NCBI GenBank assembly: GCA_964199315.1
Contig: OZ116706.1
Span: forward strand, 7,316,001 to 7,380,000
Source of the DNA: Orbicella franksi
Lineage: Eukaryota
DNA length: 64,000 nt
Reading direction: 5' to 3'
Made by a program: the position numbers and the translations under genes. The notes under the pieces were generated by a model. That model was given only the letters and a program-made list of their open reading frames with translations. It made no database searches and was not told where the DNA came from. Position 1 is the stretch's first letter. Each line of letters starts with the position of its first letter. This document shows positions 3,101 to 12,100 of the stretch, one piece after another.

Positions 3101-6100
3101 TCTTCACTGTGGACGAGGAAAATACGGAATATCAGAAACTGGATCCAAAGGTAAGCATTTTGCGAGTTGATTGTTAAGCTCGATTTCCGCCGCTCTCTCG
3201 AGTCCACTCTACGTGAAACTACGGAGAAGGAGTGCGGGCTCCTTTCCGGAACAGCGGTTGGCAACCGAGCATAGCTGGCTGTCAACGACAATAGATATTT
3301 GCGGATCAGAGTTTTGGAAATTGTTGGGTAAACCTTGGTAATCTCGAAATTTTTTCCTGGTCATCTTCGGAAATTATCAGCTTTGTAATCTTCGGGGTTT
3401 TCCGATGATTCTCGAGAACCTTCGGAATAAATTTATCCATGACGAACAGTGACGAAAGAAATTGTCCTCTCTGAACCAATTAGACGTTAGCAATTTTTCA
3501 CGTACTATTTCAAAAACGAGTGCGAGGGTTTCATCAGGTTTCCAAACGCGAGAAACATTTGAAACCACGAGGCCGCTGGCTGAAACAATTTGAAAACGCG
3601 TCCTTTTACGATTCCCAAACTTGTTCTTTTTACAATCCATTTTCATGCTAGCCAGTGTTAGTTATCTTACGTGAAACGATTTCCTGTCCTTTGTTGAGAA
3701 GTTTTGATTAAAACCCAGCCATTATCATTGGCAATCCGTTTATCTAGGTATACTTTTTGCTTCTTAAAATGACTCGGAAATTCCGGGATATTCGTAGCCA
3801 TGATTTTGTCGCCGGTGGGCTTTTTCTGCCACTCTTTCACGAAGTATTTCTTCAGGATACGGGAATTATTACACCCTCTGGAGGGAAATAACGGATATTG
3901 AATCGTGTTTTTTAGTTATGAGCGGACAATTTAATTACTTCGGTCGATTATTGCCCCCCTCGAGTTTCATTGACGAGTTATCAACTTTGGCTAAATTGAT
4001 TGAGTTTTTTCTTCAAATCTGTTCATAACATTTTCCTTCCACTTCTTTGATGGTACCGCATTTGGTAATTAAAAAAATAACCCTGCATCCTATTTCGTTC
4101 CTCAGTTGACCAGGCAAGCTCCTTATCTGAATGTATTGCAATTTATCAAAGAGGGTAAACTGTTGATGTGTATTTTTGTTTTTCATGAAAGTTTGGAAAA
4201 CGGATTGTAAATGATTTGATATGCGAATATTGAACTGTTATTTGGAAGTAGTATAGGTGATGTAATGTTTCAGGCTACATAATTTTGAATGTTAAAACGA
4301 TATCCGTTCTCTTTTCTTGTTTAAATTTAAAGTGTGTTATAGTTGTCGCGTAATGACTTGTAGTCCATTTCTGGTGAAATTTTCGGCGTACTTTCGTGAG
4401 AGCCAAGCTGGTATGAAGAGAGTAAAACACTCCACATGACAAAGGAGGCATATTGTCTACCTGTCTGCAACAGTTTTCAATTCAAGTTTTGCATTTTAAT
4501 AAGAGGGAACGCAAGTTATAATTTCTTTGAGTGTCACACTCTGAAGTTGAAACATTTTTATAAGAATGAAAACTGTTCCCTAAATGTGTATATGATTTCC
4601 TCTCGGTTCAACTGTGTCGTTTCAGTTGCTTTCGTGCTTCAGTTCTTGTTTTCTGGGTCTACAACTAGTTTTCATTTAATTTTATTGCTGTTTACCACCA
4701 GCCGTTCTTGGTGATGTTAAATTTACCGCTCGGTCGGTTTTTTCGCTATAATGGCTGACCCTTGTTTAATTATGCTAAGCCGACACGCGGCAACTTCAGT
4801 CGGCGTGCCTTGCGATTGACAACCTGTCACTCCTGGCCTTTGAATGGCTTTTTGGGTTAACGTCACGAGTAAATAATATTCAGTGAATGTTTTATCAAAA
4901 GAGAGAGCAATTATTCGCTCTAGTTAACCCGTTATGAGCGGAATTAATTTCATATTTTTGTTTTTTATTTTCCTGTGTGGACTCTGCGCTTTGGAGTTGT
5001 ATGGATGCGAAATATGCGCCTGTCTACATTTCACGAGGTCCAGCAGGTGTGCGCATGAAAACGCAGCTTTATTAATAAAGCTTCGTTTATAAAGCGGGTA
5101 AAACCGGGCCTCAACACTACACACAAAGCTGTAAACAATTGTCCGCAGGAAAATTTAAACGCAATTAACTCTGACGCAAATTTATTTTGACATTAAGGCT
5201 ACTGTGACAGTGTTCTGTTGTACCATGCTGATTTAAATTTCTGCTAAAAGCGAAGGTAGACAGGGTGACTCCAGTTTACAGCAGGCTTTGCACGCAAAAG
5301 AGTCATTTCGCTGTCGGACAAGGACAATTGACTTTGGAGTTAAGAACTTTACCTTGGCCCGAAGGCAGAAATATTTCGACCATGAAGTAACCTCGACTTT
5401 GTTGACGCTGGAGCTTGAAACGCGCTCCCTCTCCTCCTCTTGTTGATCAGCCATTATCGGCTTTTGAAAACACACACTTTCCAGTCGGGCTGCTAAATAC
5501 TTGTTGATGTGTTTATTAGGTTTTCATTATTAAATTGCACTTCACAGGTTCTCGCGACAGCAATAAAATTGTAACAGCCAATTGTGATAAACAGTTCAAG
5601 AAATGTCCAAAACCTTAACAACTCGCCAACGTGCGCGATGTAATAAGTTTACTTGCCGGCATGAACTTCTTCCTCGGTGATGTCGTTGTCATATTTTTTC
5701 TGCTTTTCTTTATTGTCGCCGTTGTTTATTCTTGATTTATTGCTTTTCATGCTTGCCGCAGACAAATTGTTTTTAACGTAATAAACGTAGGGTTATTAAA
5801 ATCGTAATAAACAATAAAATCGTGCAAAAATGATCCTTAATGGCTTCAAATATGCATTCGGTAAATTTTTTTCAAGATGACAGATCTTCGTACGATCGTC
5901 GAAAATACTTTTCGACGTTTCATTTAGTTGGTAATCTCAAGTTGCGGTGAACCAAATCCACACTTTTCCACGCGAGAACAGTTGCCGAAAGTTTCAATAT
6001 CTCAGGCAATAATACGAAGCCAGTAGGCGGTCTGTGTTTAGAAAGTTTAATAAGAAACGCAAACGGCTCGGCGTATTGCAAAGGGATGCAAAAAGGCTTT

Positions 6101-9100: not shown

Positions 9101-12100
9101 TGGGAAGTGACCTGCGATAGCATCCCATGAAGGGGGGAGTAAACGCTTTCTGTGCTAAAGAAACCAGAGTAAAGTTATGATTTTCGATCTGTAGTATTCA
9201 CCCGTGAAAGAGATTCGAAGTAAATGTTAGTTTAACGTTCACTAAAGCTAGGCATCCAAGAAATGACCTGCAAATTAGTTTGACACGGGTTTGACACGGG
9301 TTTGAGTTAACTGTGACATCAAATTCGAGGCAGTTCGTTTATAGATTTTTCAAATGCTTTCAAACCTCTTGTCATTTTGCAGAGGTATTTGTCTCATCAG
9401 CTGAAGTGTCATTTGCTTGGTTGTCCTTTTCATGACCCTCTCTCGTGTGGCTTGTTCACGTAGCGTGATATTTCTTCAAGTTCTCTTCGGTTAGAGTTTC
9501 TTGTATTGATTGCAACTGAGGCTAAAACGGAAAACTGGTTCAGATTATTCTTTATTGTTGAGGACCTTTGCGCAGTTAAAAATATTCTGAGCGTGTTTTT
9601 GGCCCTATGTCCGCAATACTGCTTAAGGTTCAATACAGTGGAGTGTTGTTAAGACGTCGGAAAAAAAAAACCCTAAAAAAAGAGAACATGACAATCTAAA
9701 AAAAAAAGATCAGTACATAAAAATGACGAACTGGCCGTCAGTGGACTTGCTCGCAAAAGACACGTGTTTTTCCACTCGAGTTAATAAGACGACTGAAATA
9801 GTTTTGTTTTTTGTGGAGCGGGCGAATATTAATTTTCCGCCGCTTTAATGAGAAGTCTTCCCCAATTAAAGGACGCAGTCTTAACATGCAAATACACCAG
9901 CCGTAGACAGATGTCAAATAAAGTCTTGGTGAAGAGAAAATAATTCTTAACTTGTGTAAATATTGACCAAACGCGGTTTAATTAAACAAAGACAACTTGC
10001 TCACGAAAACCAACTTAACAGGCCACTTTTAGCCTCACATCGTGTCAATAAAACCACCAGAAATTTGAGGAGGTGAAAATTCTTTCTTGATGAGGGCTTT
10101 GTTCGTTTCTGTTGAAAGGGAATAAAACATGTGATAAGCAGGTTTAACTCACCATAGGTTTATAGCGGTGATGTTGCTTAGTTTTAATCGGGTTAAGTTT
10201 CTTGTCTTAGCTTGTGTGAAGCTCATTTAATAGTTATTGCCTGGGCGAATGAAATTGTTTTATTTCCAGCGTTTGAGTGTTCTGAGTCACTAGAGCTCCA
10301 AGCAAACCGAGGTCTTCTAATATTGTTTTAACTTTCTCTTAATTTCACGTTAGGTGATCATTATCCCCCTCCTTTATTCACGAGTTTTTTTTGCCCGACT
10401 TAGCAATTTCAACTGTGTCTTTTAATTTCCAAACTGAATCAATTATGTAGGATGGATGTACCTAAAAAAAGCGTAAGATAGCAAAAACTTGCAAAATATT
10501 ACTTCTGACATGAAAGCTTCGGAATCGAGATGAAGCGCGCGCCTTAAGGCTTCTGCGTAAGGTTTATTGCCAGCAAATCTTGCAAAATGAAGGATTTCGT
10601 ATTTGCGTGCGCGTTTTTCAGCGGGCCTTGCTAACAATGGTTTCTGCTGACCTCTAGCAGAGGATGTTGAAGAAAATAGAGATTTGTACTCGTGTTTCCC
10701 AGCACTTCTAGCTGCGTTTGTGCTCATGTTTGTCAACAATTCTGGCAGAACAAGGTTCTCAATAGCAAACGAAGATTTGTACGCGGATTTTGTGGCAATT
10801 CTAGTAAACGTCTCATGGCAAATCCAATAAATGAGGGTTAGCGCAGTTCTTTGTTAAAAACCCGCTAGAATACATGTGTGTGTACTTTACCAGAAAGCTT
10901 TTTAAATTACATTATCACTTTTGAATTGCATTCCGTTCTTCCTATACATCAAAAAGTTAGTAATCACCAAAACTGTTCAACTTTCTGAGCGTAGAACGGA
11001 AATTACTGCAATATAGTACACGCACTCGCTGTAATACGACCTTCTTCAATACACAAAGCGGAAGACGAAAATTGAATTGCTTTCATTTACACTTTATCTG
11101 TACCCTGTGTCCTCAGGTTCTGATGTATATGGATTGCCTGCATGGTAAATGGCCCTTGGACGCGATAAAAGCCGTATTTTCACGAAGATTCCTGTTGCAG
11201 AATTGCGCGGTTGAAGTGTACACTTCCGCCGGAAGTAAGTTTACCCTTTGTTCCGTCGTATTGTCACTAGGGAGTCTAGAGTAAACTACAACGGCAACGG
11301 AGACGTCACCAAACAATGGAGCAGTATGTACAATGGCTGTGGACTTGCGTTATAATTCTTGGCACATTTTTTTGCTGTTCTCTACAAAACAACAACGTGA
11401 AATGACCAAATTCTGCGTTATCTGGAGAAACTGAACCACGAGGCCAATTGAGAAAATTTGTTTTTCGAATTTTAACGTTGTCTTACATATTCTGTTTTGG
11501 GATACCTTTGACTGTGGTAGACAAACTGAATGAATCTAGATTCTTGCGAGATTCATGGCTTGAATATAAATTAATTTTTTGATCCACGTTGTCCTTGGCG
11601 TTGCCGTCGTGTTTGCTTGAACTCCCTACTATCGTGTACAAGGTAGACCCTCTTTTCTTGGATTCCCTACAATGCTAGCAATTTTGTCTGTTGACAAGTT
11701 TTTTTCTTTCTCCTCTAAGGCTTTTATTGTTGCGCAAAAAAATACGAAGTGTTTTTACGCTATTTAGAAATGTTACAACTCAGTGTACTTCGATTGTAAA
11801 GCGACTGTTCTACTTTATTTTCTCTTTGCTTGTCTGACAGCGTCTGTGATGTTCAAGTTTGCTGATCAGCAGACCGTGAGGAGAGTAGTGCGAGCTCTTC
11901 CTCCTGTTGGAGTCGGCACATATTATGGGATACCACAAACAAGGTACGCTTGTTTTGGATAGACTGTTTGCAATCCTCTGTTTTGTCGTATTTTTATTCG
12001 ATCGTTGAACGCGCAGATAGAATCACAAGAGAACTGGACGCCAGCGCAAAATGAACGACTTGACTGGGTGGGGGGTGGGGACCGAGATAACCCCACCCCC

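Follow-up and report, generated by a model that had tools for sequence, protein, structure and literature searches.

The Mab21-NBEA/LRBA pair ranks with the most ancient gene nests known among animals. In vertebrates Mab21 runs antisense to its NBEA/LRBA host. The conserved Mab21-Lrba/Nbea nested pair was reportedly described by Tsang et al. 2009 (Genomics 94:177), and also by Nikolaidis et al. 2007 (PMC1784063). Two candidate reasons for the nest, an antisense interaction between the two genes and shared regulatory DNA, have yet to be decided between. In the accessible portions of the published text, nesting and synteny of the pair are presented as conserved, and an antisense arrangement is stated for nematodes (PMC1784063, PMC4994411), where sel-2, the NBEA/LRBA homologue, harbors mab-21 in its largest intron (PMC4994411). 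In Pristionchus, mab-21 has moved out of this intron, so nesting is not essential (PMC4994411). A regulatory-block explanation has already been proposed in vertebrates (PMC3786989, citing Tsang 2009 and Kikuta 2007; PMC11511899), in which MAB21L2 enhancers are located within LRBA introns (PMC11511899). The accessible text of these sources carries no statement of a cnidarian orientation difference, and Fig. S10 of PMC1784063 or Tsang et al. 2009 may show the direction of the Nematostella gene.

The window analyzed here is a 64,000-nucleotide stretch of the genome of the coral Orbicella franksi, which contains a single NBEA/LRBA orthologue, placed on the + strand across the window. The N-terminus of the coral host lies upstream of the window, and the part read here extends from DUF1088 to BEACH. 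The order DUF1088, PH_BEACH and BEACH on one strand (+) constitutes the architecture of the NBEA/LRBA subfamily, of which the N-terminal Neurobeachin, Laminin_G_3 and DUF4704 domains and the C-terminal WD40 domain are on record in the Dendronephthya and Branchiostoma orthologues. The DUF1088 match (window positions 1027-2091, +; C9:7317027-7318091) is the sole DUF1088 locus genome-wide; the host exons coding it span 1027-2075 (+), and 14 RNA reads join the end of the last one, at 2075, to position 2867. The exon that follows (2867-3150, +), covered by RNA reads, carries the N-terminal part of PH_BEACH (profile positions 1-35) and ends in ...YQKLDPK at the donor GAT CCA AAG/gtaagc. The next host exon (11117-11234, +), also supported by the consensus of the junction reads, opens at the acceptor cctcag/GTT CTG ATG and covers PH_BEACH profile positions 45-75, while the exons coding the BEACH domain (12292-16747, +; C9:7328292-7332747) are colinear with the scyphozoan host exons. 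The nesting intron (3151-11116, +; 7,966 bp, phase 0), defined by junction reads and splice signals, thus interrupts the PH-BEACH region. Direct evidence of its splice from 3150 to 11117 comes from 13 polyA RNA reads (run X24) and one contig (X2), and the intron is removed in one step with Mab21 inside it.

Within this intron, Mab21, the MAB21L1/L2 orthologue, occupies positions 6474-7553 (+) as an intronless ORF of 359 amino acids, with host exons on the + strand on both sides; the original prediction of an intact Mab21 nested on the same strand as NBEA is therefore borne out. The protein matches Mab-21 (PF03281; 6e-36, 124.7 bits) and Mab-21_C (PF20266; 1e-23, 83.8 bits) in Pfam, and the succession of a Mab-21 nucleotidyltransferase-fold domain and a C-terminal HhH/H2TH-like domain corresponds to the architecture of Mab21 proper ('D6', DANGER superfamily). 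It shares 95% identity with the Oculina patagonica protein 'mab-21-like 2' and 52-56% identity over the full length with bilaterian MAB21L1/L2, and it is the best among the 90 Mab-21 loci of the genome. In the Mab21 tree it falls inside the hexacoral clade, and the coral paralogue and the distant representatives fall outside. The dN/dS value between the coral and Oculina genes is 0.029; Mab21 is under purifying selection and is kept as a functional gene. An in-frame TGA located 7 codons 5' of the ATG limits the open frame to just 365 amino acids, ruling out an NBEA-Mab21 fusion protein.

The orientation of the pair was compared across animals. Sense nesting in the same intron occurs in six anthozoan lineages besides O. 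franksi, spanning both robust and complex Scleractinia, with Oculina, Acropora (three contigs), another hexacoral (L012), Nematostella and the octocoral Dendronephthya, whose host is annotated as Neurobeachin/DUF1088/PH_BEACH/Beach; 12 metagenome contigs from near relatives show the same layout. Three scyphozoan lineages (loci L015/L016, L017 and L018/L019) carry Mab21 antisense, in a phase-0 intron at a codon boundary identical to the anthozoan one. One of these, L017, derives from run SRR18358023, a run of Acromitus flagellatus (PMC9602930). The Mab21 proteins from the jellyfish loci form one clade with that of Sanderia malayensis (support 100/100). The coral paralogue at C9:2.04 Mb was considered as the counterpart of the Sanderia protein and rejected (22% versus 31% identity), which identifies the jellyfish proteins as fast-evolving true Mab21 orthologues. 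Antisense nesting was also found in one hexacoral, on a single short-read metagenome contig (L033).

Among bilaterians, Mab21 is antisense in Branchiostoma (amphioxus), where the host carries the full NBEA Pfam set, and in Haliotis (abalone), where the host gene is without a Pfam record; mab-21 is likewise antisense to its host in nematodes (PMC4994411). No host exon lies within 10 kb of the amphioxus, abalone, Asterias or Tachypleus Mab21 loci, and the Asterias and Tachypleus loci, with no host gene in that distance, are uninformative. None of the 66 metagenome loci with identities of 56% or below had a host exon within range, and the metagenome scan returned no recognizable placozoan, sponge or hydrozoan locus. 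In human LRBA, four exons on the MAB21L2 promoter side code for a portion of the PH and BEACH domains (PMC11511899), a description that fits agreement between the vertebrate nesting intron and the coral one. The proposal that this is the conserved nesting intron holds up within Cnidaria, by positional identity in scyphozoans, and may extend to vertebrates on that description. Same-strand nesting is neither coral-specific nor pan-cnidarian: it is common to Scleractinia, to a further hexacoral, to Nematostella and to an octocoral, which contradicts a flip restricted to the coral lineage, and Scyphozoa are antisense like Bilateria, which speaks against co-orientation as the cnidarian or ancestral state.

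Several non-coding elements accompany Mab21 within the intron. Conserved block 1 (5987-6052, +), about 420-490 nt 5' of the Mab21 ATG, retains approximately 76-81% identity in L033, Nematostella (L005), Acropora (L002) and Oculina (L001), and in the octocoral (L009) a core of 20 nt is matched exactly. Conserved block 2 (6303-6377, +), about 100-170 nt 5' of the ATG, contains TAAT cores and a CTGACAG motif and is probably the proximal promoter or 5'UTR of Mab21. Both blocks are conserved across Hexacorallia, and their orientation relative to Mab21 is unchanged in the inverted L033. On the other side of the ORF lies a candidate Mab21 3'UTR (7554-9135, +), with poly(A) signals predicted by a signal scan at 7946 (ATTAAA), 8214 and 9092 (both AATAAA). 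Outside the Mab21 unit, positions 3488-3584 hold a dispersed MITE-like palindromic repeat with at least 40 genomic copies, often in adjacent opposite-strand pairs; in RNA reads it appears with foreign flanks and a joint between opposite strands. No Rfam family matched anywhere in 2500-12000, the repeat included. Long inverted repeats around Mab21, a possible cause of recurrent inversion, were not found, the search yielding only two weak AT-rich pairs.

Taken jointly, these results make it probable that the coral Mab21 is an autonomous sense unit spliced out with the host intron, which reached its present direction through an inversion on the anthozoan stem, with a probable later reversal, inside a conserved regulatory neighborhood. 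The self-contained unit would comprise the two upstream blocks, the intronless ORF and the 3' region; the host polymerase would read through Mab21, and the whole 8-kb intron would then be spliced out, Mab21 itself being transcribed from what appears to be its own promoter. In the cnidarian-bilaterian ancestor, Mab21 would have stood antisense in the same intron, and the gene would have inverted together with its two upstream blocks on the anthozoan stem; one hexacoral lineage (L033) probably flipped back to antisense. The orientation comparison lends support to the early suggestion of an inversion inside the intron. The Mab21 tree gives two orientation changes, and a topology uniting all sense loci in one clade fails the AU test (p = 0.017). 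Across the comparison, Mab21 switched direction at least once and probably twice, the second flip being read from the single contig L033. The nest would have come through at least two flips, so conservation most likely attaches to a shared cis-regulatory neighborhood, with Mab21 control elements residing in the host introns, rather than an antisense interaction.

Antisense as the ancestral and sense as the derived state is suggested by the distribution of orientations, a polarity that rests on three-taxon parsimony, as the comparison includes neither an outgroup to Cnidaria and Bilateria (Placozoa, Porifera, Ctenophora) nor Hydrozoa, Cubozoa and Staurozoa. The opposite polarity, in which sense nesting dates to the cnidarian or cnidarian-bilaterian ancestor and Scyphozoa, Bilateria and the L033 lineage each inverted independently, draws on that sampling and on the gene evidently having flipped more than once, parsimony being a weak guide if flips are frequent. 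It nevertheless takes three or more separate inversions where an antisense ancestor needs two, and antisense is found in both of the deepest comparison groups, Bilateria and Scyphozoa, the latter with identical exon boundaries, which leaves a sense ancestor unlikely.

A less likely proposal still is that sense nesting amounts to functional coupling, whereby the host pre-mRNA yields Mab21 as an alternative splice product, by read-through or on a bicistronic message, or a Mab21 poly(A) site truncates NBEA before the BEACH and WD40 domains. The arrangement offers some grounds for it: the predicted Mab21 poly(A) signals read in the direction in which the host intron is transcribed, and RNA-library contigs cover the whole intron and span the exon-intron boundaries, although these may be pre-mRNA or DNA. 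The contig X1, which spans 5931 to about 9135, was considered as a discrete 3.2-kb Mab21 transcript and rejected, since the same libraries also contain the downstream intron at similar shares; contig ends are therefore not evidence of transcript ends. In keeping with a separate Mab21 unit, X22 has two polyA read pairs at 7850-8249, in the Mab21 3' region, and none on the host exon. Against coupling, the intron is cleanly excised in the 13 junction reads, and no RNA read joins the host donor at 3150 to the Mab21 block, within a polyA depth of few reads over Mab21 that is too low for detecting rare chimeric or prematurely ended host isoforms. Directly past the donor, at 3250-3449, polyA read depth is nil, and the stop codon that precedes the ATG in frame is accompanied by no conserved splice acceptor before Mab21. 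Furthermore, the upstream blocks move together with Mab21 on inversion, as an own promoter predicts, and conservation of the Mab21 protein is no different between sense and antisense lineages. At this depth, premature NBEA termination and Mab21 production from the host transcript, both raised in the original prediction, find no support. It is doubtful that the anthozoan flip created a new coupling absent from jellyfish and bilaterians, such as NBEA-initiated Mab21 in some cell types or a BEACH-less NBEA isoform; if it did, the outputs of Mab21 and NBEA would be mechanically linked in Anthozoa.

A local assembly or inversion artefact, which had been named as a possible refutation, can be dismissed: the exon-Mab21-exon order recurs on one strand in at least five independent near-relative metagenome contigs (L021, L022, L024, L026 and L028), excluding misassembly, a 6.2-kb contig (X2) crosses the ORF on both sides, and the same layout is seen in Oculina, the three Acropora contigs, Nematostella, Dendronephthya and L012.

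The position of the nest is conserved and the direction of Mab21 is not. The persistence of the nest through a change of direction argues against mechanisms based on antisense transcription and favors a regulatory-block constraint. Cnidarians also provide matched systems, sense in Nematostella and corals and antisense in scyphozoans, that permit a direct comparison of transcriptional interference, of polyadenylation within the intron and of how far host and nested gene are co-expressed. As a rare genomic character, Mab21 orientation may additionally help in resolving anthozoan relationships, for example in placing the antisense hexacoral lineage.

The coral locus unites the same two gene families as the conserved Mab21-Lrba/Nbea pair, with Mab21 nested in a BEACH-gene intron; within cnidarians this intron is identical and splits the PH-BEACH region, and the coral Mab21 lacks introns, in line with reports on Nematostella and vertebrates. 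The difference lies in direction, Mab21 being antisense to its host in vertebrates and nematodes but sense in the coral. The locus also resembles genomic regulatory blocks, in which a developmental gene is held in or near an unrelated large gene by interleaved regulatory elements, given that the coral Mab21 is likewise accompanied by conserved non-coding blocks; unlike in the vertebrate blocks, the coral evidence consists of two short promoter-proximal blocks known from sequence alone. The nematode sel-2/mab-21 pair combines a nest inside an NBEA/LRBA homologue with lineage-specific turnover, as in Cnidaria. In nematodes, however, the change was a loss of nesting, whereas in cnidarians the nesting was kept and the direction alone was altered.

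The sole DUF1088 locus of the 497-Mb O. franksi genome (exons at 1027-2091), the PH_BEACH exons and the BEACH-domain exons (12292-16747, 3' of Mab21) all lie on the + strand, which makes the host the genome's only NBEA/LRBA orthologue, with + orientation throughout the region. The window corresponds to the + strand of G000:C9:7316001-7380000. The PH_BEACH domain is encoded jointly by the two + exons that flank Mab21, the upstream one ending at 3150 (...YQKLDPK, donor AAG/gtaagc) and the downstream one starting at 11117 (cctcag/GTT CTG ATG, VLMYMD...). Among RNA reads, mapped over 2850-8849 of the window, 13 from the polyA RNA-seq library X24 cross the 3150 to 11117 splice and match the exon start at 11117 exactly, one contig of library X2 contains the same junction, and 14 reads support a 2075 to 2867 splice. 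A 7,966-bp intron containing Mab21 is thus excised whole from the host mRNA, and with the Mab21 ORF at 6474-7553, also +, this bears out the original observation that the gene is nested on the strand of its host.

The 359-aa product matches the Pfam profiles Mab-21 and Mab-21_C, both far over cut-off. It shares 95% identity with "mab-21-like 2" of the coral Oculina patagonica and, over its full length, 52-56% with bilaterian MAB21L1/L2. With a dN/dS of 0.029 against Oculina, the ORF is under strong purifying selection; anthozoan Mab21 is without introns and slow-evolving. Some 90 loci with a Mab-21 domain are present in the O. franksi genome. The second-best one, an intronless 349-aa ORF on the minus strand (G000:C9:2041364-2042410; L013:865-1911), is 25% identical to Mab21 and, on the same contig, is separated from it by about 5.3 Mb. 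Outside the window, tandem arrays on contig 15 hold about 20 ORFs that are nearly identical and roughly 613-632 aa long, and a second cluster comprises ORFs of roughly 356-403 aa (clusters at G000:C15:4677541-4839677 and C15:3205403-3296859); they resemble an expanded family of cGLR type, separate from the single true Mab21.

To compare orientation across animals, DNA around Mab21 orthologues was fetched and host exons were placed by annotation or tBLASTn. Mab21 is sense in the same intron in Oculina (host of 2,741 aa, +), in Acropora (Mab21, its two flanking exons and the DUF1088 and BEACH exons beyond them all +), in a further hexacoral (L012), in Nematostella (exon 3496-3771, Mab21 10001-11047, exon 15627-15743, all +) and in the octocoral Dendronephthya gigantea, where host exons 2560-2718 and 15846-15959 flank it and the host is annotated with Neurobeachin, Laminin_G_3, DUF4704, DUF1088, PH_BEACH and Beach. 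These sense-bearing lineages split in the early Palaeozoic or earlier, and the arrangement has been stable across them since. Mab21 is antisense in two Branchiostoma assemblies (opposite-strand host with the full NBEA Pfam set), in Haliotis (opposite-strand host of 2,824 aa, without a Pfam record) and in vertebrates. The vertebrate orientation is consistent with a region "upstream of MAB21L2" that includes LRBA exons coding for part of the PH and BEACH domains (PMC11511899), and nematode mab-21 has been described as an antisense transcript within the largest sel-2 intron (PMC4994411).

The scyphozoan Sanderia malayensis carries a full-length, colinear but divergent Mab21 (31% identity to the coral protein), and comparison rejected it as a counterpart of the coral's second-best locus. 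Relatives occur on three more contig sets (L015:8391-10549, with L016; L017:1451-3024; L018:427-2166, with L019), and in every set host exons lie opposite to Mab21. L017 derives from run SRR18358023, in which the rhizostome jellyfish Acromitus flagellatus was sequenced (PMC9602930). On L015 the host exons follow one another in full colinear order, from DUF1088 through BEACH and further, all on the minus strand, and homologues of the coral flanking exons directly adjoin Mab21, one per side, with boundaries at the same codon and in phase 0 (...VDPA/gtaatt and ttgcag/ATGCTCGCATACAGTGACTGT). Opposite strands and identical exon boundaries therefore place the scyphozoan nest in the same intron, antisense. 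In the Mab21 tree, the L015-L019 sequences and Sanderia form a 100/100 clade outside Bilateria (99-100/98), Hexacorallia and Octocorallia. Scyphozoan Mab21 is a very rapidly evolving gene: its stem branch is long, and its identity to the anthozoan protein is about 31%. In each of the three sets it has a single intron after about residue 134, a gain relative to the intronless anthozoan gene.

One short-read contig, L033, found by a metagenome scan, appears to hold an antisense exception within Hexacorallia. Its Mab21 (P0014, 69% identical to that of the window) falls inside Hexacorallia (96/97) as sister to Actiniaria (90/89), and the orthologue of the downstream host exon, with canonical splice sites and 74% protein identity, lies on the opposite strand 4.6 kb 5' of the ATG, which is the layout of jellyfish and bilaterians. 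At least two orientation changes are needed on the tree; an AU test rejected (p = 0.017) one clade of all other anthozoans excluding the L033 lineage, these others comprising sense-orientation lineages and four of unchecked orientation.

Mab21 shows features of a separate transcription unit. In the alignment of its upstream region, an in-frame TGA lies seven codons 5' of the ATG (open frame of 365 aa), making an NBEA-Mab21 fusion protein impossible, and the AG directly 5' of the coral ATG is absent as a conserved site in Acropora and Nematostella. Hexacorallia, both corals and sea anemones, share two conserved non-coding + blocks 5' of the ATG: 5987-6052, with 76-81% identity in Oculina, Acropora, Nematostella and L033 and an exact 20-nt core in an octocoral, and 6303-6377, with TAAT cores. 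The latter, nearer to the ATG, contains AGATTAAT, CTGACAG and TTAAT motifs, which look like putative homeodomain and TALE-class binding sites. In L033, where the unit is inverted, both blocks hold the same orientation relative to Mab21. The stop, the non-conserved AG and the blocks fit the promoter-proximal region of an independent gene, with a predicted rather than mapped promoter, and Mab21 may be an autonomous unit whose ORF and upstream blocks invert together.

On a tree that unites Anthozoa and Scyphozoa as Cnidaria, sister to Bilateria, the most parsimonious history is that Mab21 lay antisense in the host intron of the ancestor, the Mab21 unit (the ORF together with 0.5 kb or more upstream of it) inverted once within the intron on the anthozoan stem, and one reversal led back to antisense in the L033 lineage. 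By this comparison of Anthozoa, Scyphozoa and Bilateria, antisense is thus probably ancestral and sense derived in Anthozoa. An ancestral sense orientation would cost at least three flips, and the proposal of co-orientation as the cnidarian or ancestral state runs against the antisense arrangement of scyphozoans, in the same intron, and bilaterians. The inversion offered as its alternative is retained by parsimony, although not as an event limited to this lineage, since Oculina, Acropora, L012, Nematostella and Dendronephthya are also sense.

A coupling of the two genes, through truncated NBEA or host-driven Mab21, had also been proposed. As anticipated, the host intron carries candidate poly(A) signals (sequence scan) on its transcribed strand, at 7946, 8214 and 9092 (+). 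The host mRNA is nevertheless cleanly spliced: polyA coverage is zero over 3250-3449, directly past the host donor, and no reads over 2850-8849 join the donor at 3150 to any point inside the Mab21 block, which argues against coupling at a depth short of rare isoforms. Poly(A) sites within long introns are usually suppressed, and such suppression would suffice to explain these observations. Mab21 is nearly silent in the adult-tissue RNA libraries examined, with about one read pair within the ORF in X24 and two pairs at 7850-8249 in X22, which has zero reads on the host exon. Contigs of the "RNA" libraries X1 and X2 span the whole stretch examined and may represent pre-mRNA or DNA. An X1 contig that spans 5931 to about 9135 has deeper coverage than the intron 5' of it; its ends were rejected as Mab21 transcript ends because a second run search found the downstream intron (9300-11050) in the same libraries. 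A dispersed MITE-like repeat, short and palindromic, also lies in the host intron (3488-3584); it has at least 40 genomic copies, often paired, adjacent and on opposite strands, and reaches high depth with many differing flanks in RNA libraries.

A local misassembly is ruled out by five independent metagenome contigs of close relatives (L021, L022, L024, L026 and L028; Mab21 identity 97-99%) with exon, Mab21 and exon on one strand; seven further contigs pair Mab21 with one or more upstream exons in the same orientation.

Whatever the polarity, the nest keeps its position to the codon in Anthozoa and Scyphozoa and varies in direction, which argues against explanations of nesting that require antisense transcription and favours a regulatory-block constraint on the conserved nest. 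The accessible literature text, which excludes Tsang 2009 and the Fig. S10 drawing of PMC1784063, makes no mention of a differing cnidarian orientation. The nest itself is already well known; the regulatory-block view has been put forward for vertebrates, as relayed in PMC3786989 from Tsang 2009 and Kikuta 2007, and enhancers are found within LRBA introns (PMC11511899).
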